Shown here one piece after another: positions 2,481 to 20,420 of a stretch of DNA of 20,420 nt. The stretch is taken from the NCBI GenBank assembly GCA_002269645.1, contig NIVC01005222.1, forward strand, positions 1 through 20,420. Reading direction: 5' to 3'. The notes under the pieces were generated by a model. It was not told the origin of the DNA. It was given only the letters and a program-made list of their open reading frames with translations, and did no database searches. This stretch comes from Macrostomum lignano. Taxonomy: Eukaryota. Within the stretch, counting starts at the first letter, position 1. Each line of letters opens with the position of its first letter. The position numbers and the translations under genes are program-made.

Positions 2481-3130
2481 AGGTAGGTAGGTGGGTATGT
2501 GATCGATTTTAGCAAAAACGGCTCAATCGATTTTCTTCGAACTTGCACTGATCGTTTAGAAATTTTTCCGTGATGGTATGATTGCTTACATGACGCTTCT
2601 ATGATTCTTTCATGACGCTTCTATGATTTTATCATGACGCTGCATTTCAAGTCGAAAGAGCTGCTTGACCTTTGCAAAAAATATGTTTTTCGAATATTTA
2701 ATCCCTTTAGCATCGAGCAATTTCTTAGCCACGATGCAAGTAGAAGCGTCATGAAAGAATCATAGAAGCGTCATGTAATAAGTCATAGAAGCGTCATGTA
2801 AAAATCATAGAAACGCCATGTAAAAAATCATAGAAGCGTCATGAAGGAATCATAGAAGCGTCATGTAATAAGTCATAGAAGCGTCATGTAAAAATCATAG
2901 AAACGCCATGTAAAAAATCATAGAAGCGTCATGAAGGAATCATAGAAGCGTCATGAAGGAATCATAGAAGCGTCATGTAAAGTCATAGAAGTGTCATGTA
3001 AAGTCATAAAAGCGTCATGTTAAATCATAGAAGCGTCATGTAAAAAGTCATAGAAGCGTCATGTAAAATCATAGAAGCGTCATGTAAAATCATAGAAGCG
3101 TCATGTAAAAAATCATAGAAGCATCATCTA
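2481..3130. mobile_element. Candidate non-autonomous element (Helentron/DINE-like or foldback) carrying the 20-bp arrays
   Basis: Starts with a (ggta)n microsatellite followed by aaaaacggctcaatcgattttcttcgaactt, a layout I recall from DINE/HINE-type elements. Contains inverted 20-bp arrays. No coding capacity seen, and the family call is inference. Confidence 0.3.
2586..3127. repeat. ~19-22-bp minisatellite (aatcatagaagcgtcatgtaa) as an inverted pair: ~3 copies on minus (2586-2640), ~19 copies on plus (2741-3127)
   Basis: 2586-2623 is the exact reverse complement of 2741-2778 (38 bp), with a 117-bp spacer between them. Confidence 0.95.
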
Positions 3131-3131
3131 A

Positions 3132-3715
3132 GGCCGCTGTACACAGTCTGTGACTGCGCACGCATCCGTGTGCTTGTGTGCCTACTCAGGGGAGTTGGCA
3201 GAATGGGTTATGTGACAATCCCGCTTAAAGTGCACCAGGGTGTGAAAAATGGTGAAGAAAAATTTCCCAGATCGACTTCGATCGTTTTTTATTTACTTCT
3301 TAATAACATCAGTAGTTACATCAGTAGTTACATCAGTAGTATATACGTGTTTTCTTTCTTTAGATACTTGACTCTTCGTAAAATTGAGCACGTCTTGAAC
3401 ACGATTCTCTATTTAGCTGAAACACACCAGGCTAGGCTTAGCCTCTTTTCCTTATCTCTGAATCTCTGAGGGAGGGAACTGTCCTCCTGATCCTCGCAAA
3501 TTTGACGTCATTTATACCAATTTTTGGTTCGTTTAAAACAACAAATACTTGTTAATTTATCGTTTTATACTGAATATGGTGCTCACTAAAACAAAAACTT
3601 ATCATTAGTAGTGTGAGATTAAATTAAATTGTGAAAAATAGAAAGATTTGTTGATTTCGAGAAGAACAAGTTGACCTTCCACAAAGACTACTCAATTAGA
3701 AGGATGGGAGCTAAA
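3132..3715 (+). repeat. Dispersed repeat, copy A (diverged homologue of 10647-11225)
   Basis: Collinear shared blocks: ggcc(g/c)ctgtacac; 29/31 identity 3177-3207 vs 10681-10711; exact tgaaacacaccaggctag 3418-3435 vs 10904-10921; atctctgaatct; gagaagaac; ctactcaatt. Contains a local 12-bp x3 expansion (acatcagtagtt, ~3306-3340). Confidence 0.85.
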
Positions 3716-3984
3716 TTTCTAGGAATTTTTTGAAGGCAGGTTTCCCGAAAAAAATGCTTTACGGAGAGGGGAGATTAAATTTTTTTAGCCAAAAAATGTT
3801 ATTTCTTTTGATAGGGGGCAGACCCAATGTTCATCTTTTGATATGTGTATCTCATGGCTCTATTGATATTTATAAAAGTTTTTTGTTTATAAAATTAGGA
3901 TTCGATGTTAGTTCTACATCCAACGTCCAACACTAAAAACAAAATGTGTAAAAAATACGCAGCCCTGAAGGCAAGTCACAGTTA

Positions 3985-4640
3985 GAGCAGGGTGTCTCAG
4001 CGTCGCATAGCAGGCAGTCCACTTATCGACGGATTCGGGACTGACCCCGCCTGAACTGAGCCTGCAAGGTGAGCAGCAGGACGTCCTGAACAGGTTGGCG
4101 GCAGTAGCCCTCGCCACGTGACTCGCCAGTTGAAGTCGCCGCCGGCGCAGGATGGTGGACGGGCGCTGCAGCTTGACCCGATCGTACAGGGCCTCGGTCC
4201 CGACGCTCTCGTCAGCTCGAAAGGCTCCAACCGCCGCTCGCTCCAGCGTACCCGTCAGCGTCCATGTGTCGACTACCGCCTGCCACAGCCGAGCCCTCTG
4301 GCGGTCGGGCAGCGCTTCGGACGGAGGCAAGTCCTCTGCACCGCCGGAGGTTCTTCACGTGAAGCACCAGACCGCCGAAGTAGGTGAGCCGCTGGCAGCA
4401 TGCGAGCCTGATCATCTGCTGATCAGATGAGCCTGATCACCTGATCAGCGTGCGAGCTGCGGCACGTCAGGTCCTCTGGGATGTCGGCCGGCACAGTCAG
4501 CACCTCGGTCTTCAGCATGTTGACAATCAGACCGACGCTCGATGCCACCTCGACCAGCCTGTCGATCTGGCGCTGGGCGCCTTCAACCGACGATGACATG
4601 AGGCGAGGTCGTCGGCGTAGCCAAGCACGCTCAGGCGCTT
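3985..4640 (-). mobile_element. 5'-truncated, decayed non-LTR retrotransposon (RTE-like LINE) reverse transcriptase C-terminal fragment
   Basis: The minus strand reads KRLSVLGYADDLA (YADD at 4619-4608), then with frameshifts SSSVEGAQRQIDRLVEVASSVGLIVNMLKTEVL, RLACCQRLTYFGG, SEALPDRQRARLWQAVV, LYDRVKLQRPSTILRRRRLQLASHV and QPVQDVLLLTLQAQFRRGQSRIRR*VDCLL. Multiple frameshifts, internal deletions and a nonsense codon are present. Confidence 0.92.
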
Positions 4641-4707
4641 TTCGCCAGCTGGAACTTTGAACTTTGGCTCAGAAGTTCAAAGGCTCAGAACTTTGCCAGC
4701 TGGAAAG

Positions 4708-4911
4708 TTGCCAGCCGAGAAAACTTGCAGCAAGGAAGCAGCTAAGAAAGTTCAGTAGCTGTCTAACGTTACAATTATAAATCAACAATAAAAGCTAAAC
4801 TATATCGGATAAATTTATTTATTGCACTTATTATTGCAGTACTAGGCTGCATAACAGACCTGTATTTTAAAAACGCTTTAGCAACTTGCTGCAAATTTTC
4901 TCGGCTGGCAA
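4708..4911. mobile_element. MITE-like element: 27-bp inverted repeats around a ~150-bp AT-rich spacer
   Basis: ttgccagccgagaaaacttgcagcaag (4708-4734) matches the reverse complement of 4885-4911 at 26/27. No clear TSD identified. Confidence 0.6.
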
Positions 4912-5154
4912 AGTTTTTACACCCGTTCATAACTGCTTCTTGTGACTGACTTACTGTAACCGACTTGATGTGTGAGTATTCAATTATAAGTGCTTCAATT
5001 CAGATCATCAGTTCGAAGAGAGCTGGACTAGATCTGAACACACTGAACTGCTAATGTAGCGACCTGGTTTCAAATTTTTAAAGTGTATACATTTTTATCA
5101 AAATTATTTTCAATGTCAAGAGCTGTAAACTCCACGAAAAACTAAAGAATAAGG

Positions 5155-5370
5155 AAGCGTCATGTCAAACATAAAAAGCGTCATGTCAAACATAAAAAGC
5201 GTCATGTCAAACATAAAAAGCGTCATGTCAAACATAAAGGAAGAGTCATGTCAAACATAAAAAGCGTCATGTCAAACATAAAGGAAGAGTCATGTCAAAC
5301 ATAAAAAGCGTCATGTCAAACATAAAAGAAGAGTCATGTCAAACATAAAAGAGGCATCATGTAAAACATG
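5155..5370. repeat. 21-bp tandem array (aagcgtcatgtcaaacataaa), ~10 copies
   Basis: gcgtcatg recurs every 21 bp from 5157, with gagtcatg variants. Confidence 0.95.
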
Positions 5371-5644
5371 AAAAAAACCTCGACGCAGCTGGCGTGTCAA
5401 GGTATCGACTTTGTCAGACATCAATGGCAAACAGGTTCTGTGCGTTTTATTTTTACTGACGCTCGGACATTGCAAATTTTGCTTTTCTCTCCGTCTCAGG
5501 TGCTTTCTACTAGCGAAATTTAACATACACATTTGCCATCGATGTCGGCTTGTTGTCCGGAATGTACTGTGCATCTGTAGTTACTCTGTCATTTATCCAG
5601 AGACTGTAGAAGGGCGCAGTGTGGTCCATCAGCTCAGGTACAGA

Positions 5645-6459
5645 TGCATGTTAATGTTAAGCCTTAAAACTGGCTGTGTCTACAGTGTCCAATGAGACAA
5701 ATGGCATGTTAATGTTAAGCCTTAAAACTGGCTATGTCTACAGTGTCCAATGAGACAAATGGCATGTTAATATTAAGCCTTAAAACTGGCTATGTCTACA
5801 GTGTCCAATGAGACAAATGGCATGTTAATGTTAAGCCTTAAAACTGGCTATGTCTACAGTGTCCAATGAGACAAATGGCATGTTAATATTAAGCCTTAAA
5901 ACTGGCTATGTCTACAGTGTCCAATGAGACAAATGGCATGTTAATGTTAAGCCTTAAAACTGGCTATGTCTACAGTGTCCAATGAGACAAATGGCATGTT
6001 AATATTAAGCCTTAAAACTGGCTATGTCTACAGTGTCCAATGAGACAAATGGCATGTTAATGTTAAGCCTTAAAACTGGCTATGTCTACAGTGTCCAATG
6101 AGACAAATGGCATGTTAATGTTAAGCCTTAAAACTGGCTATGTCTACAGTGTCCAATGAGACAAATGCTGGCTAATGTTAAGCCTTAAAACTGGCTATGT
6201 CTACAGTGTCCAATGAGACAAATGCTGGCTAATGTTAAGCCTTAAAACTGGCTATGTCTACAGTGTCCAATGAGACAAATGCTGGCTAATGTTAAGCCTT
6301 AAAACTGGCTATGTCTACAGTGTCCAATGAGACAAATGGCATGTTAATATTAAGCCTTAAAACTGGCTATGTCTACAGTGTCCAATGAGACAAATGCTGG
6401 CTAATGTTGAGCCTTAAAACTGGCTATGTCTACAGTGTCCAATGAGACAAATGCTGGCT
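5645..6459. repeat. 58-bp tandem array, ~14 copies
   Basis: Unit ggcatgttaat(g/a)ttaagccttaaaactggctatgtctacagtgtccaatgagacaaat starts at 5703, 5761, 5819 and so on. Confidence 0.98.
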
Positions 6460-6503
6460 AAAAGAGCTGGCGTGTAATTGGTGATTGCAGCGCTTCAAAA
6501 AGA

Positions 6504-6506
<3 letters not shown>

Positions 6507-6535
<29 letters not shown>
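6507..6535. repeat. (TA)14 microsatellite
   Basis: Pure TA run about 60 bp upstream of ATG 6597. Confidence 0.99.
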
Positions 6536-6537
<2 letters not shown>

Positions 6538-6596
6538 GCATAACGCAGTGGAGCGCCAATCCAGCAAGTTCTGATAAAACAGCAGCATATTTTGCA

Positions 6597-7903
6597 ATGT
6601 TAGTTGGTGTAATATCGCTATTGTTTTTGTGCTACCCAGCTGTAGCATGCGAGCAATGCTCTGCCGTGTATGAGCTTCTGACCAACACCTGTCCGAGTGC
6701 TCTGTCTGGCCTGGAGCCCGCGACCGCTGCGGTCGAGTCCGAGTGCGTGCTGCACTGCACTCTGAATAGTTGGTGCCGACTGTCTGTGTACCTGACAGAC
6801 AGTGGTGCCTGCTACAGCCTGCCTAACGTGACTTTAGTGACTGGCAGCTGCGGCCTGGTGCGAAGGAAACTGGCCATCTTTTCCGGTGAGCTTTTAGCAT
6901 GGCAGTTGATGCAGACATATTTGTCTCGCACAATATGTGTGAGAATAATGTGTGAACTATCATCATTTCAGACGCATCAACGTCTGCAACTGCCTCAACG
7001 ATCGGATCAACTGGTTCCACGACCAGCTCGACCAGCGCAACTGGGACTCAATCTCCAGTCACTGTAGCATCGACCACAATGATGCAGAGTGTCACCACGG
7101 CTGCCATTTCGTCCGGATTGTCGAACCTGAGCTTCGCCTCAAGCGTACTGCTTTGGTACAACTTTCGAAAGGGTTTTATGAACCTGGCGAACCCGGGCCA
7201 TTTCGATGCCTCACCTTTTGGTGTTGCAGATCAGGATGCACTCAAAGGAGTTCGCCTCAACGGGTCCTCCGGTTCCTATCTCGAGATTCATTCGACCAAC
7301 TTTTTCAAAAATTTTAAATCAGGGAAAAGCTTCAGCTTCTTTTTTCAAGGGACTTTTGCTAACAACGCCTCGTGAGTTTTCTGCGAATTCAATACTAATA
7401 TAATGTATTCGAAATTTTAACGCGTTATTACTCATTATTAACCACACAGCGGTTGCATACATTGCAGGCTTCGATGCATCAGTTCGTTTAGCAGCTGCTC
7501 GTACAACACCACCGTCAGCCACTTCAGCACTGACATCGCTGCCAGGATTTACTCCAAGACCTACTTTTCAGACGGCTCCGAAGAATTCGCGTCTGTGGGC
7601 GCAGAAGCAGCTCTTCCGAACAACGGTTCTGAGCAAGTCCACTCTATTGGACTGGCCTTTATTGGAGAGGATAATGAGTACCTGGACGAGTGGTACATGA
7701 ACGGAAGTTTCTACGACACGGAATCACCGAACAAAGACGGCGACAGTCCAGCCGCCAACTCGACCTTCGACTGCCTGCGCATCGGCAACTGCTTCAGCGC
7801 CGGCCCTCGGCCCTACAACGGCTGGCTGCAGTGCTGGGGCTTCGTCAACGGCACCCTCGGCCTGTCCGAGTTTAACGGCCTTCGCCACTTGTGCAACTCT
7901 TAG
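6597..7903 (+). CDS. Secreted PAN/apple-like + Ser/Thr-rich linker + LamG/ConA-like (pentraxin-like) domain protein, 374 aa; exons 6597-6885, 6972-7371, 7468-7903
   Basis: Signal peptide MLVGVISLLFLCYPAVA. PAN-type Cys pattern CVLHCTLNSWCRLSVYLTDSGAC. Introns G|gtgagc..tttcag|AC (phase 1, 86 bp) and TC|gtgagt..ttgcag|G (phase 2, 96 bp) give an uninterrupted 1125-nt CDS. Linker DASTSATASTIGSTGSTTSSTS. LamG-like motifs WYNF, GVRLNGSSGSYLEI, SFSFFF, WYMNG, LRIG and YNGWLQCWGFVNGTLGLSEF. Confidence 0.85.
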
Positions 7904-7932
7904 ACTGCGCGCTCTGAATCCACGGCGCAGCC

Positions 7933-8006
7933 AGAATGGCCAGAACTTTGTAAGAATGGTCAGAACTTTGTAAGAATGGCCAGAACTTTGTAAGAATGGC
8001 CAGAAC
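7933..8006. repeat. 20-bp tandem repeat (agaatggccagaactttgta), ~3.7 copies
   Basis: Directly visible 30 bp after the stop at 7903. Confidence 0.95.
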
Positions 8007-9319
8007 CTCTATCGCTAAAATAGCATAGAATTGTCAACAGGCGTCCAAAGCGTCTTGAAAATGTAAATCAGTGAGTGAATCCAGTTGTTAGGCAAATAGC
8101 AAAGAATTGTAACAGCTTGGTAGATGCTAGGAAAAAAATCTGATAGAAGTGCAGAGAAAACGTGATGTAGAAATGATGCGGTACTGCTGACAGTTGCTAA
8201 GTTTGAGAAGCAGTCTAAGAAGTCCTCCCTTAACTCTTATACAACTGCCTAGCTGTCTATCCTTGCAGTCTTACTTTCTTTTCTATTTCTTGATTTTCTT
8301 TTCATCTATCTGCAGTTTTCATTGTTTGCTGAGATAATTGAAGAAACTTTGAAGAAAACATTTGCTGCTCCCAAAATCGATTTCTAAGACTGAGCAAAGT
8401 GAAACAAAGGCCTGCAACAGTTATTGCGGCAAACGAAGGCTCCGTTCTGCTTGTCTGCTTCCCTACAATAGAGCGACTTTTCTCTAGTTGGGAACAATTT
8501 TCATCATCAAGGATGCTGAGCTTCCGATCACGGGGCTATAAATTTCAATCGATCGGTTCTGAAAAAGCTTTCCCAAGTCAAAGTATCCGGAGGCCGTTAA
8601 ACACACGAGAGACTCCAGGCGGGTCTGTGGCTGTTGAATCCGACATGCACAAAACTGAAGCAGTGGAGGGAGCTGTTGCAGTAGATCAAAAAGCTTCTTT
8701 TCAAAGCCAGCTGTTTTAGTAGTTTTTTTGTTCTGGTCACACTGATTGATTTATTTACCAGATTACCCAATCCAGAATTTTTATAATTAACGCCAGTCTA
8801 TATTTTTAGCGCCTCGCATTCTGCCGTTTTGTTATTTTTTCTTATTCTGCAATCGTGTTGAGTTTCCAACTGTTTTTACGCACAGCGCGATCTAAAAGTC
8901 ACGCATGCCAGGTTTTTAATTCTGAGTTTGGACAAAAAATGGTGTTGACAAAAACGGATCCCTGACTTGACCTGATCCTGATTGACAGCCTTTTAAGCAC
9001 GCACAGATGTTGTTGGTATTTTTTGCCAAGCTGGTACGTGTTCCTCTTTACAAACCATTCATTCTATTTGCTATGCTTTAAATCTGCTCACTTTTCTCGA
9101 TTTCCTTAGATAGATATAAACATGCGTAATTATGCATATTTGCCTTCTTATCGTCAGCGAACTATCCTGTTAAGTCTTAATATAATATGCCTATTTTTGT
9201 AGCCCAGTCCCTTCTGTCGGCTCTTGAATTTAAAGTAGTGAAAACCAGACACTCATATTCTAAAAAAACTCTACCTTAAATTAATTTATACGTGACTGAA
9301 TCAATTGCGACTAGCGAGC

Positions 9320-9475
9320 CCTGGCTGTGAAACAAACATGACGTGATGCAAATCGGACTGCTTCTCAGCAGCAGAATCATGGAGTAAAAATTTCACTTCA
9401 CAATTTTCCTGCTGATGAGGAACTATTGGCTACAGAATCCATCCCGTAGATCTTCGGGCACAGGAAAAAACTGAC
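9320..9475 (+). pseudogene. Possible decayed THAP zinc-finger fragment (P-superfamily-type transposon relic?)
   Basis: Across three frames: PGCETN (9320-), ANRTASQQQNHGVKISLHNFPADEEL (9348-9425) and YWLQNPSRR (9424-). This resembles THAP C-x-x-x-GC-x-N...S-[FL]-H-x-F-P-x-D...W...R. Stops and frameshifts are present, and the C-terminal CSxHF motif is not recoverable. Confidence 0.3.
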
Positions 9476-9551
9476 TGGTATGGTACGGCAGTTTTATATG
9501 AGAGTTTCTGTTCCAGATGCTAAGGTCTACATTTCTAGGGGCGCGGCCTGC

Positions 9552-10517
9552 TGTGCACTCTGATGTGCCTGATGTGCCTGATGTATGGTCTGATGTGCCT
9601 GATGTACCTGATGTGCCTAATGTATGGTCTGATGTGCCTGATGTACCTGATGTGCCTAATGTATGGTCTGATGTGCCTGATGTGCCTGATGTGCTTGAGG
9701 TGCCTAATGTATGGTCTGATGTGCCTGATGTGCCTAATGTATGTTCTGATGTGCCTGATGTGCCTGATGTGCTTGAGGTGCCTAATGTATGGTCTGATGT
9801 GCCTGAGGTGCCTAATGTATGGTCTGATGTGCCTGATGTGCCTGATGTGCTTGAGGTGCCTAATGTATGGTCTGATGTACCTGATGTGCCTAATGTATGG
9901 TCTGATGTGCCTGATGTACCTGATGTGCCTAATGTATGGTCTGATGTGCCTGATGTGCCTGATGTGCTTGAGGTGCCTAATGTATGGTCTGATGTGCCTG
10001 ATGTGCCTAATGTATGTTCTGATGTGCCTGATGTGCCTGATGTGCTTGAGGTGCCTAATGTATGGTCTGATGTGCCTGAGGTGCCTAATGTATGGTCTGA
10101 TGTGCCTGATGTGCCTGATGTGCTTGAGGTGCCTAATGTATGGTCTGATGTACCTGATGTGCCTAATGTATGGTCTGATGTGCCTGATGTACCTGATGTG
10201 CCTAATGTATGGTCTGATGTGCCTGATGTGCCTGATGTGCTTGAGGTGCCTAATGTATGGTCTGATGTGCCTGATGTGCCTAATGTATGTTCTGATGTGC
10301 CTGATGTGCCTGGTGTGCCTAATGTATGGTCTGATGTGCCTGATGTACCTGATGTGCCTAATGTATGGTCTGATGTGCCTGATGTGCCTGATGTGCCTAA
10401 TGTATGGTCTGATGTACCTGATGTGCCTAATGTATGCTCTGATGTGCCTGATGCACGCTCTGATGTGCCTGATGTGCCTTATGTGCGCTCTAGTGTTGCC
10501 TGGTGTGCACTCTGATG
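9552..10517. repeat. Compound 9/12-bp minisatellite (gatgtgcct variants plus aatgtatggtct) with a 273-bp higher-order repeat
   Basis: The diagnostic tgt variant recurs at 9742, 10015 and 10288 (273-bp spacing). The array is bounded by a 14-bp direct repeat tgtgcactctgatg (9552-9565, 10504-10517). Confidence 0.97.
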
Positions 10518-10646
10518 GCACAGGCTCGATTCCAAGTTCTGTCACATTAATCTGGGGGCTAAATCAGAATCTCCGCTTGGGTCTGCTCGTACAATTAATT
10601 ACAATTAATTGAGGAGCCAAAGCACAGTGAAGTGAACATGCCTAAC

Positions 10647-11225
10647 GGCCCCTGTACACTCCTGTGTGTCCGCGCGCTTTTGTGCCTGCTCAGGGGAGTC
10701 GGCAGAATGGGCTGTAATGCCTCGCCGGTTGTGTGACAATGTCGCTTGAAGTGCGCCAGGGTGCACACAGCCCCCGGCTCTAATAAAAATCACTTCGTTC
10801 ACTTCGATTTCCTTCTCAGTATTCTACTAATCAGTAGTATAGACGTTATATTTTCATTCTTCTTTCCACTTTTCTTCCCTTTTACGATTCTCCATTATTT
10901 TCTTGAAACACACCAGGCTAGACTCGTCTTCTTTGCTAATCTCTGAATCTAGTCGCGCCGGGCGGATCTTGGAAAAGCTCTGGTCCTGGACAAATTGTTG
11001 TCTATCTGTTTTAATTTTTTGACTCGCTTAGAAAATAATTATTCGTTCCATTATGAAAATGGTGCCTGAATTTGAAAATTATGAAAATCTAATTTGTGAA
11101 TAGTAATTTTATTAATTGCGAGAAGAACGCCTTCCGCAATATTCTTTTAAGTTGTCTTGTCTACAGAAAAGTACATCAATGCACTTTCGAATGCTACGAG
11201 CGTAGCTACTCAATTGAATAAAGAT
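10647..11225 (+). repeat. Dispersed repeat, copy B (diverged homologue of 3132-3715)
   Basis: Same collinear blocks as copy A. Confidence 0.85.
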
Positions 11226-11589
11226 TTCAACTGGATTCGACCTTCAACCATCAGACTAAAAACAACTGAACTCATTTTCAACAAACGCAGCTATTTCTAC
11301 TTATAGTAGTTCGTAGCAAAATAGTGCAGTTTGTATCTACGTGTACTGTTTCGCTATAACTGCTTCATTATTCTGACCATTTGTATAATATACTGTCACC
11401 CAAACACCATCACACATGACTTCTTTCCCACACGTTTATTATTCATCAACTCTTCCTTACATTGGCCTGAAAAAGGTGGAATAATGGCCACGAATGTGTG
11501 GAATATTGGCCTTAAATGTGTGGCATCTGTGCTGGACAAAATGCAGATAAAATGCACTTGTTTAGCATGCAGCTTGACTGGAAAACTCG

Positions 11590-11665
11590 GACGCTAACGC
11601 GCGCTCGTATTTCGGCTCGAGCTCGGCTACATGCCTGCCATTGGCTGAGCTCTTCTACCCAATCA
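11590..11665 (+). promoter_or_regulatory. Candidate proximal promoter of the ANK-cGLR gene (CpG-rich patch with two opposed CCAAT boxes)
   Basis: attgg at 11640-44 and ccaat at 11659-63, following a CpG-dense stretch about 125 bp upstream of ATG 11789. Motif evidence only. Confidence 0.25.
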
Positions 11666-11788
11666 AATTCTGTTCGCGCATTTAAACCGCTCTCACTCGT
11701 AATTTTCTCTCCGTTTCGCTCAAGCCTCTCCAAATGAGATCGAAAGCTGCCCCTACAGTTTGCTCAGCTTGTGCTGTCTGAGTTGAAA

Positions 11789-14700
11789 ATGCTCCAGACA
11801 ATTCTGTTGCTGCTCATGCAGACTGCTGGCAAGTATGCGGAACAGAGAGACAATGACTGCTCATCTCAGCTCAGCGCAGCCATATTAAATGGCAACATTG
11901 AAACCGTGGACAGTTGCCTGGTCAGACATGTCGACGTCAACAGGCTCGCGCCATTCAAAGGCAGCTGGCTGGCTCCTGTGCATCTCGCGTGTGCATTCGG
12001 ACAGAGGGAGATTCTCGATAAGCTAATAAAAGCAGAAGCCGATGTTGACCTTCAACTCAGCAACGGGATGTCGGCCCTCTTCATCGCGTCTGGTAATGGG
12101 CAGGTGGAAGTTGTGGACTTGCTCATCAAGGCTCAGGCGGATGTGAATCTTCGGGAAGCAAGCGGGCGCTCGGCCCTCAACGTCGCCTCACAAGAGGGCC
12201 ATTTCCAGGTAGTGGAATCCCTGATCAAAGCGCATGCGGACCCCAACTTACAAGACAATGCAGGCTATTCACCTGTTTTTATCGCATTGCATTGCGGGCA
12301 CCAGAGAGTGGTGAAGTCCCTGCTTAAAGCGAGTGCGGATCCCAACTTGGGCAGGAAAGATGGTGTCTCATCTTTGCACATCGCATCGCAACTGGGCGCT
12401 AAAGATGCGATGCAACTTCTTGTCAAAGCACTCGTGGATCTTGACATTCAGGAAGCACATGGCTGCACACCTCTTTACTTGGCATCGCAGAGCAACAGCA
12501 TGGAAGTAGCGAACTGCCTACTGACCGCACAGGCGGATCCGAATCTCCAGGTCGTTAGTGGAATTTCACCTCTGGCATTCGCAGCTCAGAAAGGCGGCTG
12601 TCGGGTAATTGAGGCGCTCTTGAAAGGGCGCGCTAATGTCGACATTCAAGAAGTCTATGGGCGCGCGCCGCTGTACGTTGCCTCCGAAAATGGCCATCAC
12701 CAAATTGTAGACTTACTCATCAAGTCTCAAGCAAGCATCGATCTTCAAGAATTGAGGGGTCGGACGCCTCTCTACATTGCAGCAGAAAATGGTCACGAAC
12801 GGGTGGTAAATTTTCTTATTGAGGCGCAAGCCGATTTAAACCTGCAAGAAATTGAAGGGTGCTCGCCTCTCTTCATTGCCTCACAGCAGGGGCATCACCG
12901 AGTTGTCATTAAGGCGCAGGCTGACGTCAATTTGCAGGGAATCGGCGGAGGATCGCCTCTCTTCATAGCATCGCAGAATGGTCATTGGGAAGTGGCTGAA
13001 TCTCTCATAAATCAGAATGCCGACGTCAACCTGCTAACAGACGAGGGAATATCACCGCTTTATATCGCCGTGCAGAATGGCTACTACAGGATAGCTAAAC
13101 AACTGATTGAGGCCGATGCCAAAGTCGATCTTCAAGAGAAGCACGGTCGCTCTGCGCTTCACATTGCAGCTCATTCCGGTCAACGCCTAGCGGTAGAGCT
13201 GCTCATCAAAGGCCAGGCTGATGTCAACCTTCGTGAAAGCGACGGATCTTCACCTCTATTTGCGGCAGCATTGCGGGGACACCACAGTGTAGTAAGCGCT
13301 CTTATCGAAGCTAAGTCAGAAGTCGATTGCGTGCAAAGGGACGGTGCAACTTCGCTCTTTGTTGCCTGTCAAAATGGTTTTATAGAAGTAGCGCGTTCGC
13401 TAATCAAAGCTCGGGCTGATGTCAATCTCCAGAGAGACAATGGTGCATCGCCACTCTACACTGCCTCCGAAAACGGACATACTGCAGTGATTGAATTGCT
13501 GATCATGGCGCAGGCTGATATTAATCTTCAAAGGAAAAACCGCATGTGCCACTGCATTGCTTCTCAAAATGCAAGCGGAAATGGACTTTCTAATCAAAGC
13601 GCTCGCTAATGTCGATGCCGTCAGTGACACTGGGTCTTCACCTATTTCACCGCTTCTCAAAATGGCCATCATCGAGTAGTGCACTTACTTATTAAGGCTA
13701 ATGCAAGTGCTAATCAACAACTCCTCAATGGCTGCTCTCCCCTGTACGCTGCATCGGAAAGCGGTCATCGGCAGGTCGTTGGGCTGTTAATTAAGGCTCA
13801 AGCCGACGCCAACTTGCCCAGTAGGAATGGCTGCTCACCTCTTTTCGTGGCATCGCAGAACGGCCACGAGCAAGTAGTAAAACTGCTTATAGAAGCCGGG
13901 GCCGTCGTTAATCTTCAAGACATCGAAGGACGCTCAGCCCTCTTCATTTCCTCACAGCAGGGTCATCATCAAATAGTGGAAAACCTCATCAAAGCAGAAG
14001 CTGATCTAAATGCTCAAGATTTTCAAGGCTGTTCACCCCTATACATCGCATCGCAGCAAGGGCATTCAAAAGTTGCACTTTCGCTGATAAAGGCAAACGC
14101 GGACGTGAACCAGCAAAAGCATGACGGAGTGACGCCACTTCATATCGCATCACAGAACGGTTTCGCTGAAATCGTGGAAGCCCTGCTCGAGGCAAGAGCA
14201 GAAGTCGGTCTTTTATCTGAATCAGGTCAGTCGGCTCTAACGGCTGCATTTCATGGTGGCCATCGTGCTGTGATGTCTCTACTGATCAAGTCAATGGGAG
14301 GCAGGATAGTTCCCAATACAGGTAGTGTCGTCTCAAAAACAGGCTCTGCTAATTTCTTTGACGAGTTACTTTCGGGGTGAGTTTATTGCGAGCGTACATA
14401 AATTCGCTATAAAAGTTAAATAGGAATTACAAACACGATTAAAACTTGTTAATTTCCATCTCCTAGCAAACTTTGCTCACTGATAATCCTCTTCATTTTT
14501 CAGGTCGGCTCTCGTTGAATACCGACTGAGCCAGCGGCTCTCTTCTGCTCTGTGTAAGTCAGGATTTGTTGATTCCAGAGCCGCCCTACAGAGTGCAGTC
14601 GCCGATGTCTTGCAAGCAATACTGCAGAATCGGCGGTCGGACAAGTCCTTTGTTGTCGGAAGCTACTCAGAAGGCTGGGGCAACAATCTGAAGACGCTGG

Positions 14701-16366
14701 ATGGCCGGACGGACTCGGAGTCCGATATTGACGTGATGAGTCTAATTCCTGGTAGGCTGTACCATCTGAGGGGCATCTGCAGTGCTGATTGTAGCGATGC
14801 GAAGGAGCACGTAGATTACATTAACGGCCACGTAAAAATACCCGGATATGGTAAATAAGCAAACAATTTGTGTTGAAACCAGCAGTATCTGAGTAAAATT
14901 TCTGCAGTAGAATTTCGTTTACATTTTAGCCTCCAGCCCAGCGACCCCCTTTCACGGATCTTCACTCAAGCCAGCCGTGGATCAGGTCGATGCCAGCCGT
15001 CTCTGCCGCTACCCGCCCATCGCTCCTCTTCAGCCTGACAGAGTCATCAAATCCAACATCCCTCAGCACCTACTGGAGTCACTGAGGCAGGAGCTGCTGG
15101 CTTCGCCATGCCACGTGGTCCATGCTGCTTCTCCAGGTCAAGACGGCGAACAGCTTCGTGTGAGCACCACATTCCTAGAGAAGCGAATGCTCAGAAGTCT
15201 CTCCACCCTACAGGGCCAGCTATTTATCGTACTAAAGTATTTGATTAAGAAGATTATTTCAAATAAATACGGCTTCAACGTGGCCGGATTCAAGTCTTAT
15301 CATGCCAAAACTATCACATTCCGAATGGTGGAGGAAACACCAAGGGAACTGTGGAAGCCAGAAAACCTCTTGAGCCTCGTGAGAAGATCGCTGCACATGC
15401 TACTTGACTGTGTGGAAAGCAGTCATACCCCGATAATGCTCATGGCCGGGTCATGAACCACTTCTTTCTGTGCAATGCAGACATTTACCTAAAAGGAGTG
15501 GAGCAGAAGGGTAGTGGTGTGAGCGCAGCTTTTGAAAAAGCCGCAGTTACCCTTTGATCGACTACCTGCCCCAGCTGCTGCTTCAGTTCCAAAGCAGTCT
15601 GAAGCCGGCCAGCAACTCCGGCAGGTTCTACTTTCACCCGTTCCTCCTCTTGCCACATTTCTGCATGTCCCAGAGACCCGCGTTGAGTTCTGGCAGCCTT
15701 GAATTTCACGAGATCTACTATGTGGTCAGAGAAGCCATCGAGCGACTTTCTCACGGAGACTGTGGCAAGGAGTCCCAAGAGACTCTCACAGCACTGCTTG
15801 CCAGACTGCCAGACTGCGCCTTCTCAGCTCGAGAAGCACTCAGAATTGTTGCCAGTCTGAAATTCGGCTACCGAAGCACCGCGAAGAGAATAATTGACAA
15901 CTGCAGGGGCCATGTAGTGAGCCGCGGCATCGACTGGTCCACTGAAAGGACCGCAACTGACGCCACCGTTGAGTTCGTGTGGCGACATCTGAAAAGTCGA
16001 GACTCACTGTGGAGATTTTGCTTTGAATTCAGCCAGCGACCGGCATTAGTAAGAGAATTGTCTGCGGATATCTCAGAGTGCTTTCCCATCAGGATGAGCA
16101 ACTACGAGACATATTTCTATGTGAACTTCGACGCTCTGCTGCAGTCGCTTCGCCTGGAGTTGTGTGGAGTTGGTGACGCGGATGCGCTGGACTGGATCCG
16201 GGATATGGCCCGGCGTGAGGATGCGGATGAGCAGGAGCTGCTATCAGCTGCTCTCTACTCACCGGACTCCGAGCAGGTAGCGTCACTAACACTGAAGCTG
16301 AGACACCTGGTCGGCCCAGTTCCCGCCTGGTTTCTGGACCGCCTGGCAACCAAATGGCGGCTGTAG
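11789..16366 (+). CDS. Ankyrin-repeat (~25) + Mab-21/cGAS-like (cGLR) nucleotidyltransferase fusion protein, ~1,460 aa; exons 11789-14376, 14504-14850, 14930-16366; small frameshifts at ~13571/13646, ~15430, ~15553
   Basis: About 25 repeats of type GxSPLxxAxxxGHxxVVxxLIxAxADVNL. Phase-2 intron GG|gtgagt..tttcag|G and phase-1 intron G|gtaaat..ttttag|CC both join in frame. NTase motif VVGSYSEG-x17-DIDVM, third acidic residue in AVDQVDA, and Mab-21 motifs LRVSTTFLEKRML, LKYLIKK and KSYHAKTITF. A C-terminal helical extension ends LATKWRL*. The start codon is uncertain (11789 or 11816, or an upstream exon spliced at 11821/11822). Confidence 0.9.
14504..15560 (+). other. Mab-21/cGAS-like nucleotidyltransferase domain of the fusion gene
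   Basis: The GS and DxD motifs are in exon 2. The third Asp and the Mab-21 helical lobe motifs are in exon 3. Confidence 0.88.
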
Positions 16367-17470
16367 AGTTTGTGAAGATGTAGAGAACTGCGGTCTGTCG
16401 GCAGCGCTCTTTTGGTGACGCTCTTGTGATCATACGGTTAACTGATTTCTTCTTTAAAAACACATGTTTTCCTTCAGAAATTCCCTGTTTAAAATGCCAA
16501 CATTCTCCTTTAACAACTGAAAACGCCTGTAGAGTTGTAGATGGTAGACATCCTCATCCAAAAAGAACAGTGTACATGTACAGATGCTAATGTGCATATG
16601 TGGATACTTGTATGGCTATTTTTTCTTTCGCTTCCTATTCCCAACGCCCCAGCTACAATTTCCCAAATCCTTAGTGTATGTGCACTACAGTACAGTATTT
16701 GCACCAGCGCTTGTAATTGCTTTAAAATCGCGTCATTTTCTAATGACGACTGGAGCATTGCGGCAGTGCGGCCTGAGTTGGAGTAGCTGCTCGCCAATGC
16801 GTAAACAGGTAGAGTTTTTATGTACATTCATACTGTGCCTTCTGTGAGTATAGTACAGCAAAACGAAAAGCCATGAGCGCTGTTTTGAACCTTATAATTA
16901 GAGCAGCTCACAAGAGTACAGCAAACTCAGTCTAAAGTTATAGAAACATTTGCTGCTATACGTACGCAGCTGGGCAGACTGACGCTCAGGCGGCAGGGTA
17001 AGAGCTGCACTGCATCACCATGATCGATAAGCCATAGGCGTAGGGTGATGGCATGGAGTTGCAGGTACATTTGAGCCCCATGATACCGTGTGCACGGTGC
17101 AGCTCTTTAACTGGTGCATGTACTCAGTGCTTGCTCTTGCTGCAAAGTTAAACACTTGTATACTAGGGTACTGTAGCTATAGCAGAGTGCCGACACTGAC
17201 TAGTGGCGAGAAATCCGAAAGTTGCACTATTATGCATGTAGCTGCTGTACGCGAATGCACATGTGTGGCTTCGGGTACATGTAGGTCTCATGTACATGCA
17301 CTAATTTTAATGTCCCTAACCATGTACCTGCAGTTCAGGGAAGCAGCCAGACTGACAAAAAACCGAGAACTCAAACCGCTCCTGGCCTATCGCCATTTCG
17401 AATCTCACTTTTGGACACATTTCAAAGCTTACATACGCAACAGCATGTAATAAAATGTTTCTATCCCTGC

Positions 17471-18218
17471 GACATGCTTTTGGCGCCATTGTCAGAAACC
17501 CTTGACATGCACTGGCGCCATGTACTGTCAGAAACTCCTGACATGCTCTGGCACCATTGTCAGCAACCTCTGACATAATCTGGCACCACTGTCAGAAACC
17601 TCTGACATGCTCTGGCACCATTGTCAGAAACATCTGACATGCTCTGGCACCATTGTCGGAAACCTCTGACATGCTCTGGCACCATTGTCAGAAAGCTCTA
17701 ACATGCTCTGGCACCATTGTCAGAAAGCTCTAACATGCTCTGGCACCATTGTCAGAAACATCTGACATGCTCTGGCACCATTGTCGGAAACCTCTGACAT
17801 GCTCTGGCACCATTGTCAGAAAGCTCTAACATGCTCTGGCACCATTGTCAGAAACATCTGACATGCTCTGGCACCATTGTCGGAAACCTCTGACATGCTC
17901 TGGCACCATTGTCAGAAAGCTCTGACATTCTCTGGCACCACTGTCAGAAACATCTGACATGCTCTGGCACCATTGTCGGAAACCTCTGACATGCTCTGGC
18001 ACCATTGTCGGAAACCTCTGACATGCTCTGGCACCATTGTCAGAAACATCTGACATGCTCTGGCACCATTGTCAGAAACCTCTGACATGCTCTGGCACCA
18101 TTGTCAGAAACTCCTAACATGCTCTGGCACCATTGTCAGAAAGCTCTGACATGCTCTGGCACCATTGTCAGAAAGCTCTGACATGCTCTGTCACCATCGT
18201 TGGAAAACCGTTACATGC
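17471..18218. repeat. 32-bp tandem array, ~23 copies, each with an internal 7-bp hairpin
   Basis: Unit tggcaccattgtcagaaacctctgacatgctc at 32-bp spacing (17581, 17613, 17645...). tgtcaga/tctgaca are reverse complements around a 4-nt loop. There are no spacers. Confidence 0.98.
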
Positions 18219-18720
18219 CTTAATGAAGGAGGCTTCACCCGAAGATAATTATACATTTATGTACCAAAAAACGAATTTGTATTTCATCAAACAGCAAAAA
18301 TGAAAAAAACATTTCGCTTCAAACACGAGAGCAGACATTTACAGTCAGAGAAACAAAAATATTCATAGAAGTCAAACAAATAAGAACACAAAAAATATTG
18401 TCGACGCATCAGCTTCACACCCGCTACTTGCTACTGAAGCCAGTAGTGTAATCGAGACAGAAAAATGGAGAAGCACTCAGTCAGGAGGATATTAGAATTC
18501 TGGCTTTGTGTACAGGCGGCATGGCAGGTTGGGTCCACGCGAACAGTTCAGACCTGCCAAGCTGAATTTTATGTACAGAAATTTTTACTGAGAAACAAGC
18601 TAAGGAGGCATTGATGAGTAAAAAATAAAGATACTGTTTGCTGCTCAGTTAACTGAAAATGTCTAAAAAACGAGTGCACACAATCACACATGCTCAGCAT
18701 TTCAACGGTATGTACATGCT

Positions 18721-18850
18721 CAAATATTGGTTGTCAATAGGGCCATTCGGTTGCTAAGGGCGTTAATATTGGTCAAATATTGGTTGCTAGGGGCACCACA
18801 AGTTTTATTGGCTTGCTAAGTATATTAAAGTGTTTATCCGTTGCTAAGGA
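18721..18850. promoter_or_regulatory. Cluster of 4 ATTGG (CCAAT) and 4 TTGCTA(A/G)G (RFX X-box half-site-like) motifs
   Basis: attgg at 18726, 18768, 18779 and 18807; (g/c)ttgcta(a/g)g at 18750, 18783, 18812 and 18840. Function not shown. Confidence 0.3.
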
Positions 18851-18865
18851 CGCTGTCGAAAGCTT

Positions 18866-18871
18866 TTTATT
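18866..18871 (-). terminator. AATAAA polyadenylation signal of the minus-strand gene
   Basis: tttatt on plus, 11 nt beyond the TGA at 18885-18883. A second copy is at 18804-18809. Confidence 0.5.
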
Positions 18872-18882
18872 GCAAAGGCCGG

Positions 18883-19347
18883 TCACCAAGGTCTCCAGAG
18901 GCTGTCTCCGGTGGGCACGCCGCCGCTGTCGTCAAGGCAACAACGGTCGCCGATCACCGTCGGCTCGTACGGCCCGGGCGAAATCGGCTCGTAGCGCGGC
19001 TGCTCCGGCGGCGGCGGCTGCTCGCGAAAGGCGCGCCGCTTCTTCGCCGGCGGCTGCAGCTGCCGCATCGGCGGGGCGGCGGTGCCGACCGAGGGTTCGG
19101 CGAGGCCGACAGCTCAATGAGCGCCGCGGCGGCCGTGGCGGTGGCGCTGGCTGCGGCCAGCGAAGTTGTCGACAACTTCTTCGGGGTCGGCGGGGTCGCC
19201 GAGTGCTGATTGGACAGATCGCCCAGGGCCGGCCGGCTGGCGGCGGCGGAGAGGGCGGATATGGGGGAGGGCGCGGGAGCGGACGCGAGCGCGGCCAGTT
19301 TCTCGCGCCCGATAGCCGCAGGCGAGTCCGCATTGTCCAGATAGCCC
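18883..19347 (-). CDS. 3' terminal coding exon of an unidentified Pro/Ala-rich, probably nuclear protein (upstream exons beyond the window); one apparent -1 frameshift at 19073-76
   Basis: GC-rich island. Acceptor gctgac...aacccgcag|G at 19348/19347. Reading: GYLDNADSPAAIGREKLAALASAPAPSPISALSAAASRPALGDLSNQHSATPPTPKKLSTTSLAAASATATAAAALIELSASPNPRSAPPP, then after one added C: PPMRQLQPPAKKRRAFREQPPPPEQPRYEPISPGPYEPTVIGDRCCLDDSGGVPTGDSLWRPW*. AATAAA follows. Confidence 0.55.
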
Positions 19348-19433: not shown

Positions 19434-20420
19434 TCAGGCCATAGACTAATCAGACACATGAGCATACAGCTCAGGCCAGACTACTCAGACACATGAGCAC
19501 AAAGCTCAGGTCAGAGACATCACACAGACACTGATGAGCACACAGCTCAGGTCAGAGACATCACACAGACACTGATGAGCACACAGCTCAGGTCAGAGAC
19601 ATCACACAGACACTGATGAGCACAAAGCTCAGGTCAGAGACATCACACAGACACTGATGAGCACACAGCTCAGGTCAGAGACATCACAGAGACACTGATG
19701 AGCACACAGCTCAGGTCAGAGACATCACACAGACACTGATGAGCACACAGCTCAGGTCAGAGACATCACACAGACACTGATGAGCACAAAGCTCAGGTCA
19801 GAGACATCACACAGACACTGATGAGCACACAGCTCAGGTCAGAGACATCACACAGACACTGATGAGCACACAGCTCAAGTCAGAGACATCACACAGACAC
19901 TGATGAGCACACAGCTCAGGTCAAGAGACATCACACAGACACTGATGAGCACACAGCTCAGGTCAGAGACATCACACAGACACTGATGAGCACACAGCTC
20001 AAGTCAAAGACATCACACGGACACTGATGAGCACACAGCTCAGGTCAAGAGACATCACACAGACACTGATGAGCACACAGCTCAGGTCAGAGACATCACA
20101 GAGACACTGATGAGCACACAGCTCAGGTCAGAGACATCACACAGACACTGATGAGCACACAGCTCAGGTCAGAGACATCACACAGACACTGATGAGCACA
20201 AAGCTCAGGTCAGAGACATCAACAGACACTGATGAGCACACAGCTCAGGTCAGAGACATCACACAGACACTGATGAGCACACAGCTCAAGTCAGAGACAT
20301 CACACAGACACTGATGAGCACACAGCTCAGGTCAAGAGACATCACACAGACACTGATGAGCACACAGCTCAGGTCAGAGACATCACACAGACACTGATGA
20401 GCACACAGCTCAAGTCAAAG
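19434..20420. repeat. 41-bp tandem array (gagcacacagctcaggtcagagacatcacacagacactgat), >22 copies, runs off the window end; probably intronic to the minus-strand gene
   Basis: gatgagc recurs at 19533, 19574 and onward. There are 40/42-bp variants and a degenerate lead-in from ~19434. Confidence 0.98.

Follow-up and report, generated by a model that had tools for sequence, protein, structure and literature searches.

Gene structure at the locus

We analysed a stretch of 20,420 nucleotides (nt) of the genome of the flatworm Macrostomum lignano (NCBI GenBank assembly GCA_002269645.1, contig NIVC01005222.1, positions 1 to 20,420 of the forward strand), hereafter referred to as the window. Three-frame translation combined with splice signals showed that one protein of ~1,445 amino acids (aa) is encoded at 11789-16366 on the plus strand. 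In this protein an array of ankyrin repeats (ANK) is followed by a nucleotidyltransferase (NTase) domain of the type found in cGAS and cGAS-like receptors (cGLRs) and by an additional C-terminal domain.

The reading frame is predicted to start at an ATG at 11789 and to end at a TAG at 16364-16366. In exon 1 (11789-14376) the start codon and a short N-terminal cap are followed by 24-25 ankyrin repeats and by a linker that ends in FFDELLSG. The donor of this exon at 14376/14377 (G/GTGAGT) opens intron 1 (14377-14503, 127 nt, GT..AG), which lies between the ankyrin array and the enzyme domain. Exon 2 (14504-14850) encodes the N-terminal spine helices and the first NTase strands, including G903-S904 (14658-14663) and D925-I-D927 (14724-14732), and is followed, after a donor at 14850/14851 (G/GTAAAT), by intron 2 (14851-14929, 79 nt, GT..AG, ending in TTTTAG). 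The first part of exon 3 (14930-15574) supplies the remainder of the NTase core and the Mab-21_C helical lobe, with D984 (14980-14982), an S-Y-H-A-K motif (15295-15309) and an MNHFF motif; its second part (15575-16366) supplies the family-specific C-terminal domain of ~260 aa and the stop codon. Both splice joins are in frame, reading FFDELLSG/SALVEYRL and HVKIPGY/ASSPATPF, respectively.

The region had been described in an initial annotation, made from the sequence alone, as some 25 ankyrin repeats spliced in frame to a cGAS-like domain at 11789-16366, with junctions 14376/14504 and 14850/14930. The coordinates and both canonical GT-AG junctions proved correct, and our count of 24-25 repeats agrees with the proposed number. 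Its remark that the gene is split over five disconnected open reading frames (ORFs) needs one qualification. Five large plus-strand ORFs do lie between 11789 and 16366, and the in-frame TGA that ends the second of them (14378-14380) is part of the intron 1 donor. Of the four breaks between these ORFs, however, an intron alone explains only that at 14377-14503, with intron 2 located in the next gap; the remaining three are frameshifts, to which the initial annotation alluded only by calling for a frameshift-corrected protein. The first of these, at 13548-13645, is a patch within one ankyrin repeat where the plus-strand frame passes from 2 to 0 and back to 2 and where a straight reading would meet two stops. 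The other two, also on the plus strand, are a single C absent from a C run at 15428 and the absence of 7 nt at 15554.

The first two ORFs consist almost wholly of ankyrin repeats. Pfam Ank_2 matched the first (11771-13609) at E=2e-124 and the second (13679-14380) at E=1e-39, and Ank matched at E=4e-96. We counted 22 regular repeats at an exact spacing of 33 aa, to which a single disrupted repeat and, at the N-terminus, one or two capping repeats are added. The predicted isoelectric point (pI) of the array is 5.9, compared with 8.7 for the NTase core.

The C-terminal domain (~260 aa, 15575-16363) is conserved in the paralogues described below and is mostly helical with a few short strands. An AlphaFold2 model of the isolated domain reached a mean predicted local distance difference test score (pLDDT) of 83 and a predicted template modelling score (pTM) of 0.85. 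It gave no significant fold match in the PDB (Foldseek, best E=0.7) and no Pfam match. In an exhaustive HMMER search, profile positions 340-590 were covered only by M. lignano proteins, and on this evidence the domain appears to be restricted to that species.

Fold, active site and paralogues of the enzyme domain

The best match to the joined enzyme part was the GenBank protein PAA59246.1 (P0001; BOX15_Mlig031899g1, 890 aa), which is 97% identical. We modelled residues 291-890 of this protein with AlphaFold2, using 12 paralogues, and obtained a pLDDT of 81.6 and a pTM of 0.85. Foldseek returned 53 PDB matches at E≤0.001, and the 50 matches listed were all cGAS, MAB21L1, MB21D2, Cv-cGLR1 or Sp-cGLR1, the best being cGAS 4k9b (E=2e-6, template modelling score ~0.5 on the target). 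The model thus supports a predicted bilobal cGAS/Mab-21 fold for the domain, the identity that had been proposed from sequence motifs. The helical lobe is also recognizable by sequence: Pfam PF20266 (Mab-21_C) scored 24.8-26 bits against a cutoff of 24.1 for the window protein and PAA59246.1, and it matched all 12 paralogues scanned, with a best E of 3e-7.

When the PDB was searched with a sequence profile, the match was confined to the C-terminal lobe of cGAS (E=2e-5) and did not cover the catalytic triad; the triad was therefore mapped through an alignment with canonical PF03281-positive relatives. In the alignment of the flatworm family with six such Mab-21 relatives, an S-D-x-D motif containing D925 and D927 and the P of G-P-A are invariant. 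D984, which is the first D of AVDQVDA, corresponds to the D of the canonical D-x-V-x-A-x-R-C-x-x-W-P and is likewise invariant, as are S-Y-H-x-K and the R-x-S-x-x-x-x-E of a W/L-R-x-S-x-x-x-x-E motif. All four stretches named in the initial annotation (GSYSEG, DIDVM, AVDQVDA and KSYHAKT) are present, and the three acidic residues that it considered retained are indeed kept, together with G903-S904. Across paralogues with an identity of only 37-60%, the G-S pair and the three Asp residues show at least 90% conservation, and P0023 is the single paralogue examined in which the third Asp is lost.

Li et al. 2023 (Cell; preprint PMC9980059) catalogued ~3,000 cGLRs with a motif that consists of G-S, 8-20 residues, [DE]h[DE]h, 50-90 residues and h[DE]h, and that begins as h[QT]GS. 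The window protein contains G903-S904, 20 residues, D925-I-D927-V, 54 residues and V-D984-Q, in agreement with the motif from G-S onwards. Judged from these residues the active site looks complete, and both the fold and the active-site residues give good support for classing the protein as a cGLR.

When the joined enzyme part was used as a protein query, 35 matches were obtained, all from M. lignano, and the exhaustive HMMER search gave 848 relatives at E≤0.001. The paralogues fall into at least 86 clusters, and every named cluster that we checked was from M. lignano. The remote relatives are canonical proteins with PF03281 plus PF20266, some of them with tetratricopeptide repeat (TPR) regions. 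Many paralogues, ranging from 870 to 1,575 aa, have the ankyrin part N-terminal and the enzyme part C-terminal, for example P0005 (871 aa), P0013 (931 aa), P0047 (1,378 aa) and P0057 (1,575 aa). P0013 is 49% identical and has its intron between the ankyrin and enzyme parts (11027-11455 of locus NIVC01001673.1, L002) at the identical position, six residues before a conserved (E/R)LSQ motif. Because this domain-boundary intron is shared, the fusion is old within the family, and the domain boundary coincides with an exon boundary; given also how many paralogues have the same layout, the ankyrin-enzyme architecture appears ancestral in the family. The P0013 cluster itself comprises four gene models (BOX15_Mlig003740g1, g2, g3 and g4), at least three of which lie on one 252-kb contig, which suggests tandem copies.

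Evidence for and against an enzymatic ankyrin-cGLR family

We therefore consider it likely that the locus is one copy of a large, lineage-specific M. lignano family of ankyrin-repeat-fused cGLRs, with a bilobal cGAS-fold NTase, a complete active site and a family-specific C-terminal domain. By analogy with characterized cGLRs, the enzyme would be inactive until its ligand is recognized, and the activated enzyme would then condense two nucleoside triphosphates at the G-S / D-x-D / D site to form a second messenger, a cyclic or linear nucleotide. The ankyrin solenoid may serve as a protein-interaction surface, either for the activating ligand or for recruited partners, a speculation that Li et al. 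also make (PMC9980059). The more specific proposal of the initial annotation, in which a protein and not a nucleic acid would trigger the enzyme, found no support in our analysis. Li et al. associate basic surfaces with nucleic-acid sensing (PMC9980059), and because the NTase core has a basic predicted pI, such sensing stays compatible with the data.

Several observations weigh against this interpretation. Pfam PF03281 (Mab-21 NTase), which had been suggested as a check of the domain, gave no match even at E≤1 for the window protein and 12 paralogues, and PF20266 was the only one of the two families to pass. The residue preceding G-S is V and not Q or T (F-V-V-G-S), so the strict regular expression h[QT]GS finds nothing; however, the M. 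lignano proteins accepted by Li et al. have M, L, F or T at that position (PMC9980059), and the Q/T rule was therefore evidently not applied strictly. The main text of PMC9980059 mentions neither M. lignano nor any activity of its members, and the planarian S. mediterranea has neither cGAS nor STING (PMC13563047). The window copy carries seven indels and two in-frame stops relative to PAA59246.1, and neither the 7-nt gap at 15554 nor the scrambled patch at 13548-13585 can be put down to a simple homopolymer error.

The first group of these points would suit a non-enzymatic scaffold of the Mab-21 type, which retains the fold and relies for signalling on protein-protein interactions of its ankyrin and C-terminal domains. 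We regard this reading as possible but doubtful. In its favour are the undetected PF03281 and the substituted residue before G-S, the lack of a reported activity in the main text of PMC9980059, the large protein-interaction modules that flank the enzyme on both sides and the lack of STING in other flatworms (PMC13563047). There are also precedents, namely MAB21L1 and shrimp Mab21 proteins reported to activate IKK-epsilon outside nucleic-acid sensing (PMC12928593). However, the conservation of G-S, of both Asp residues of D-x-D, of the third Asp (P0023 being the single exception) and of S-Y-H-x-K across paralogues as divergent as these is hard to explain without catalysis or nucleotide binding.

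The indels raise the question of whether the window copy is a recent pseudogene, with real frameshift mutations affecting one of a number of near-identical copies in a genome that is redundant and was recently duplicated. Besides the seven indels, the two stops and the two lesions that are not homopolymer-length changes, this reading is favoured by the 180 Mb of the DV1 genome that lie in blocks at least 95% identical (PMC5730564), so that spare copies can decay, and by two private amino-acid changes in the window, to Y and M, which are absent from PAA59246.1 and from the UniProt protein A0A1I8I0B1 (P0037, ML2 assembly). We nevertheless judge it unlikely on comparison with the PAA59246.1 locus on NIVC01002284.1 (L001), which aligns with window positions 3501-18197 at 98.6% identity. 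Over the ~10 kb from 3501 to 13547 the alignment contains 20 indel events and not a single substitution. From 13548 onward substitutions amount to ~1.2%. Because the differences up to 13547 are indels only, both sequences would represent the same haplotype there and indels of such kind would be assembly noise; judged from this alignment, the indel-only pattern is typical of consensus error in long-read assembly. PacBio reads underlie both public M. lignano assemblies (PMC5730564).

The change from substitution-free to diverged sequence falls exactly inside the worst frameshift patch (13548-13645), where the window differs from NIVC01002284.1 by five deletions totalling 9 nt and by four clustered substitutions. 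This change of pattern indicates a probable copy or haplotype switch in one of the assemblies, inside the ankyrin frameshift patch. NIVC01002284.1 carries two single-base frameshifts of its own in the ankyrin region (corresponding to window positions 12139 and 12990), where it is otherwise identical to the window, and because of these PAA59246.1 starts at an internal Met. Both PAA59246.1 and A0A1I8I0B1 are intact and in frame at all three frameshift sites of the window, and the latter shares the allele-specific residues of the window. Outside the frameshift patches the window and NIVC01002284.1 differ by 15 synonymous and 14 non-synonymous changes, a ratio of non-synonymous to synonymous differences per site (pN/pS) of 0.29 (binomial p=0.001), and the gene therefore appears to be under constraint by purifying selection. 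Intron 1 shows 7 differences in 127 nt, against 1.2% in exons. Taken together, the frameshifts in the window are most likely long-read consensus indel errors plus a copy switch rather than the result of pseudogenization. A0A1I8I0B1 has a length of 3,199 aa and is itself a chimera, which omits several ankyrin repeats and, past the cGLR stop, runs into the GC-rich sequence corresponding to window positions 18850-19304 and then into unrelated sequence.

For the junction between the two parts, the PAA59246.1 gene model on the 98.6% identical locus crosses both introns, and so do the UniProt models P0036 and P0037 from the ML2 assembly. For Mlig_3_7, the annotation in GenBank rests on a genome-guided RNA-seq transcriptome (StringTie, TACO, TBONE) (PMC5730564). 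These models and the splice signals support a single gene for the ankyrin array and the NTase. That the two would be adjacent genes, with an ankyrin transcript ending at the TGA at 14378-14380, is highly improbable: the in-frame TGA does overlap the donor and intron retention would yield an ankyrin-only product, but an RNA-seq-derived model and two further models cross the junction, the ankyrin-intron-NTase layout recurs in many paralogues, and exon 2 has neither a start codon context nor a separate N-terminus for an NTase-only gene.

Relation to known cGLRs and remainder of the window

The architecture is not new, although the initial annotation had allowed for that possibility. In the catalogue of Li et al., 13% of cGLRs have extra domains, ankyrin and TPR repeats included (Fig. 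1C, PMC9980059), and ANK-cGLR fusions are listed as a class that includes ANK-cGLRs of M. lignano and Stylophora pistillata. In Table S2, Ank_2 is recorded for PAA67649.1 and PAA58690.1, both of which fall within the M. lignano accession block, and Table S3 lists five M. lignano proteins that were cloned for the activity screen (PMC9980059). One of these, PAA45980.1 (#90 in Table S3), belongs to a cluster that matches our family profile at E=9e-116. PAA59246 and five paralogue accessions were not found in the parts of the supplements that were searched, which says little, and M. lignano is absent from the part of the species table that was searched (PMC9980059). Nor did automated annotation miss the fusion, as had been feared, given that GenBank PAA59246.1 and the UniProt models already join the two parts. 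The locus is thus a new, uncharacterized member of a large family that Li et al. 2023 have already catalogued as candidate sensors of innate immunity and that is represented in GenBank and UniProt.

The ANK-cGLRs of Li et al. resemble the present protein in that an ankyrin array is fused to a cGAS-like NTase with the same motif logic, and the M. lignano entries belong to the same species and family; their text does not deal with the long array of 24-25 repeats or with the additional C-terminal domain. The nearest relatives outside Macrostomum are TPR-fused invertebrate cGLRs, in which a core of Mab-21 and Mab-21_C likewise stands beside a repeat-type protein-interaction module. They differ from the flatworm family in that they match PF03281, have C-terminal TPR-like regions, are 24-27% identical and lack the C-terminal domain of the flatworm proteins.

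Vertebrate cGAS, the best structural match (4k9b), shares the G-S / acid-x-acid / D logic of the active site and S-Y-H-x-K, and its Mab-21_C lobe can be aligned by sequence, but it is only 14-16% identical. The spacing from G-S to the acidic pair is 20 residues in the flatworm protein and ~11 in vertebrate cGAS, the flatworm protein has large N- and C-terminal additions, and none of the DNA-binding features of cGAS (zinc thumb or others) was detected in it. The human Mab-21 proteins MAB21L1 and MB21D2 have the same fold (5eom, 7lt1) and are likewise orphans with respect to a ligand, whereas the flatworm family keeps the triad and adds the ankyrin and C-terminal domains. According to the legend of Fig. 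1 in PMC9980059, no functional active site is predicted for Mab21L1/2/3.

For nematodes and "most" platyhelminthes, Li et al. report nothing beyond Mab21-like proteins (PMC9980059), and our literature searches for STING or cGAS in M. lignano returned nothing specific. M. lignano could conceivably run a STING-independent cGLR system. Its flatworm relatives lack STING and cGLRs, yet in this species a family of ANK-cGLRs with an ever-present C-terminal domain of ~260 aa has expanded to roughly a hundred copies. In such a system the C-terminal domain or an ankyrin-docked partner could act either on the nucleotide signal, as its new receptor or effector, or as a new module for sensing ligands; we consider this speculative and rather improbable.

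The ankyrin-fused cGLRs are orphan receptors, none of which has a known ligand, product or downstream partner. As a laboratory flatworm, M. lignano is transgenic and amenable to RNA interference, and its very large ANK-cGLR expansion stands in a phylum for which loss of cGLR and STING signalling has otherwise been reported. The species therefore offers a practical system in which to identify the stimulus of a cGLR gated by repeat domains and the reader of its signal. It is the family that is of value rather than this single locus, which adds little beyond GenBank, UniProt and Li et al. 2023.

The remainder of the window is unusually rich in minisatellites, consistent with the 15% of simple and tandem repeats reported for the M. 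lignano genome. Tandem arrays were found at 1119-1596 (96 nt x5), 2741-3131 (22 nt x18), 5646-6453 (58 nt x14), 17471-18197 (32 nt x23) and 19451-20417 (41 nt x24), and a further minisatellite occupies 9560-10484 with periods of 78, 195 and 273 nt. Long ORFs at 9517-10612 (332-349 aa, in three frames and on both strands) were considered as genes and rejected as artefacts of that minisatellite. The upstream ORFs between 674 and 8716 gave no Pfam matches. Several ORFs of 98-156 aa on the plus strand at 6597-7903 start with a signal-peptide-like, Cys-rich sequence, again with no Pfam match, and may represent exons of a gene that lacks an annotation. On the strand opposite to the cGLR gene, and downstream of it, a gene for a 352-aa protein with a helix-loop-helix (HLH) domain (PF00010) is located at 15497-18842 on the minus strand of NIVC01002284.1, corresponding to the region from about window position 18900 to beyond the window's end.

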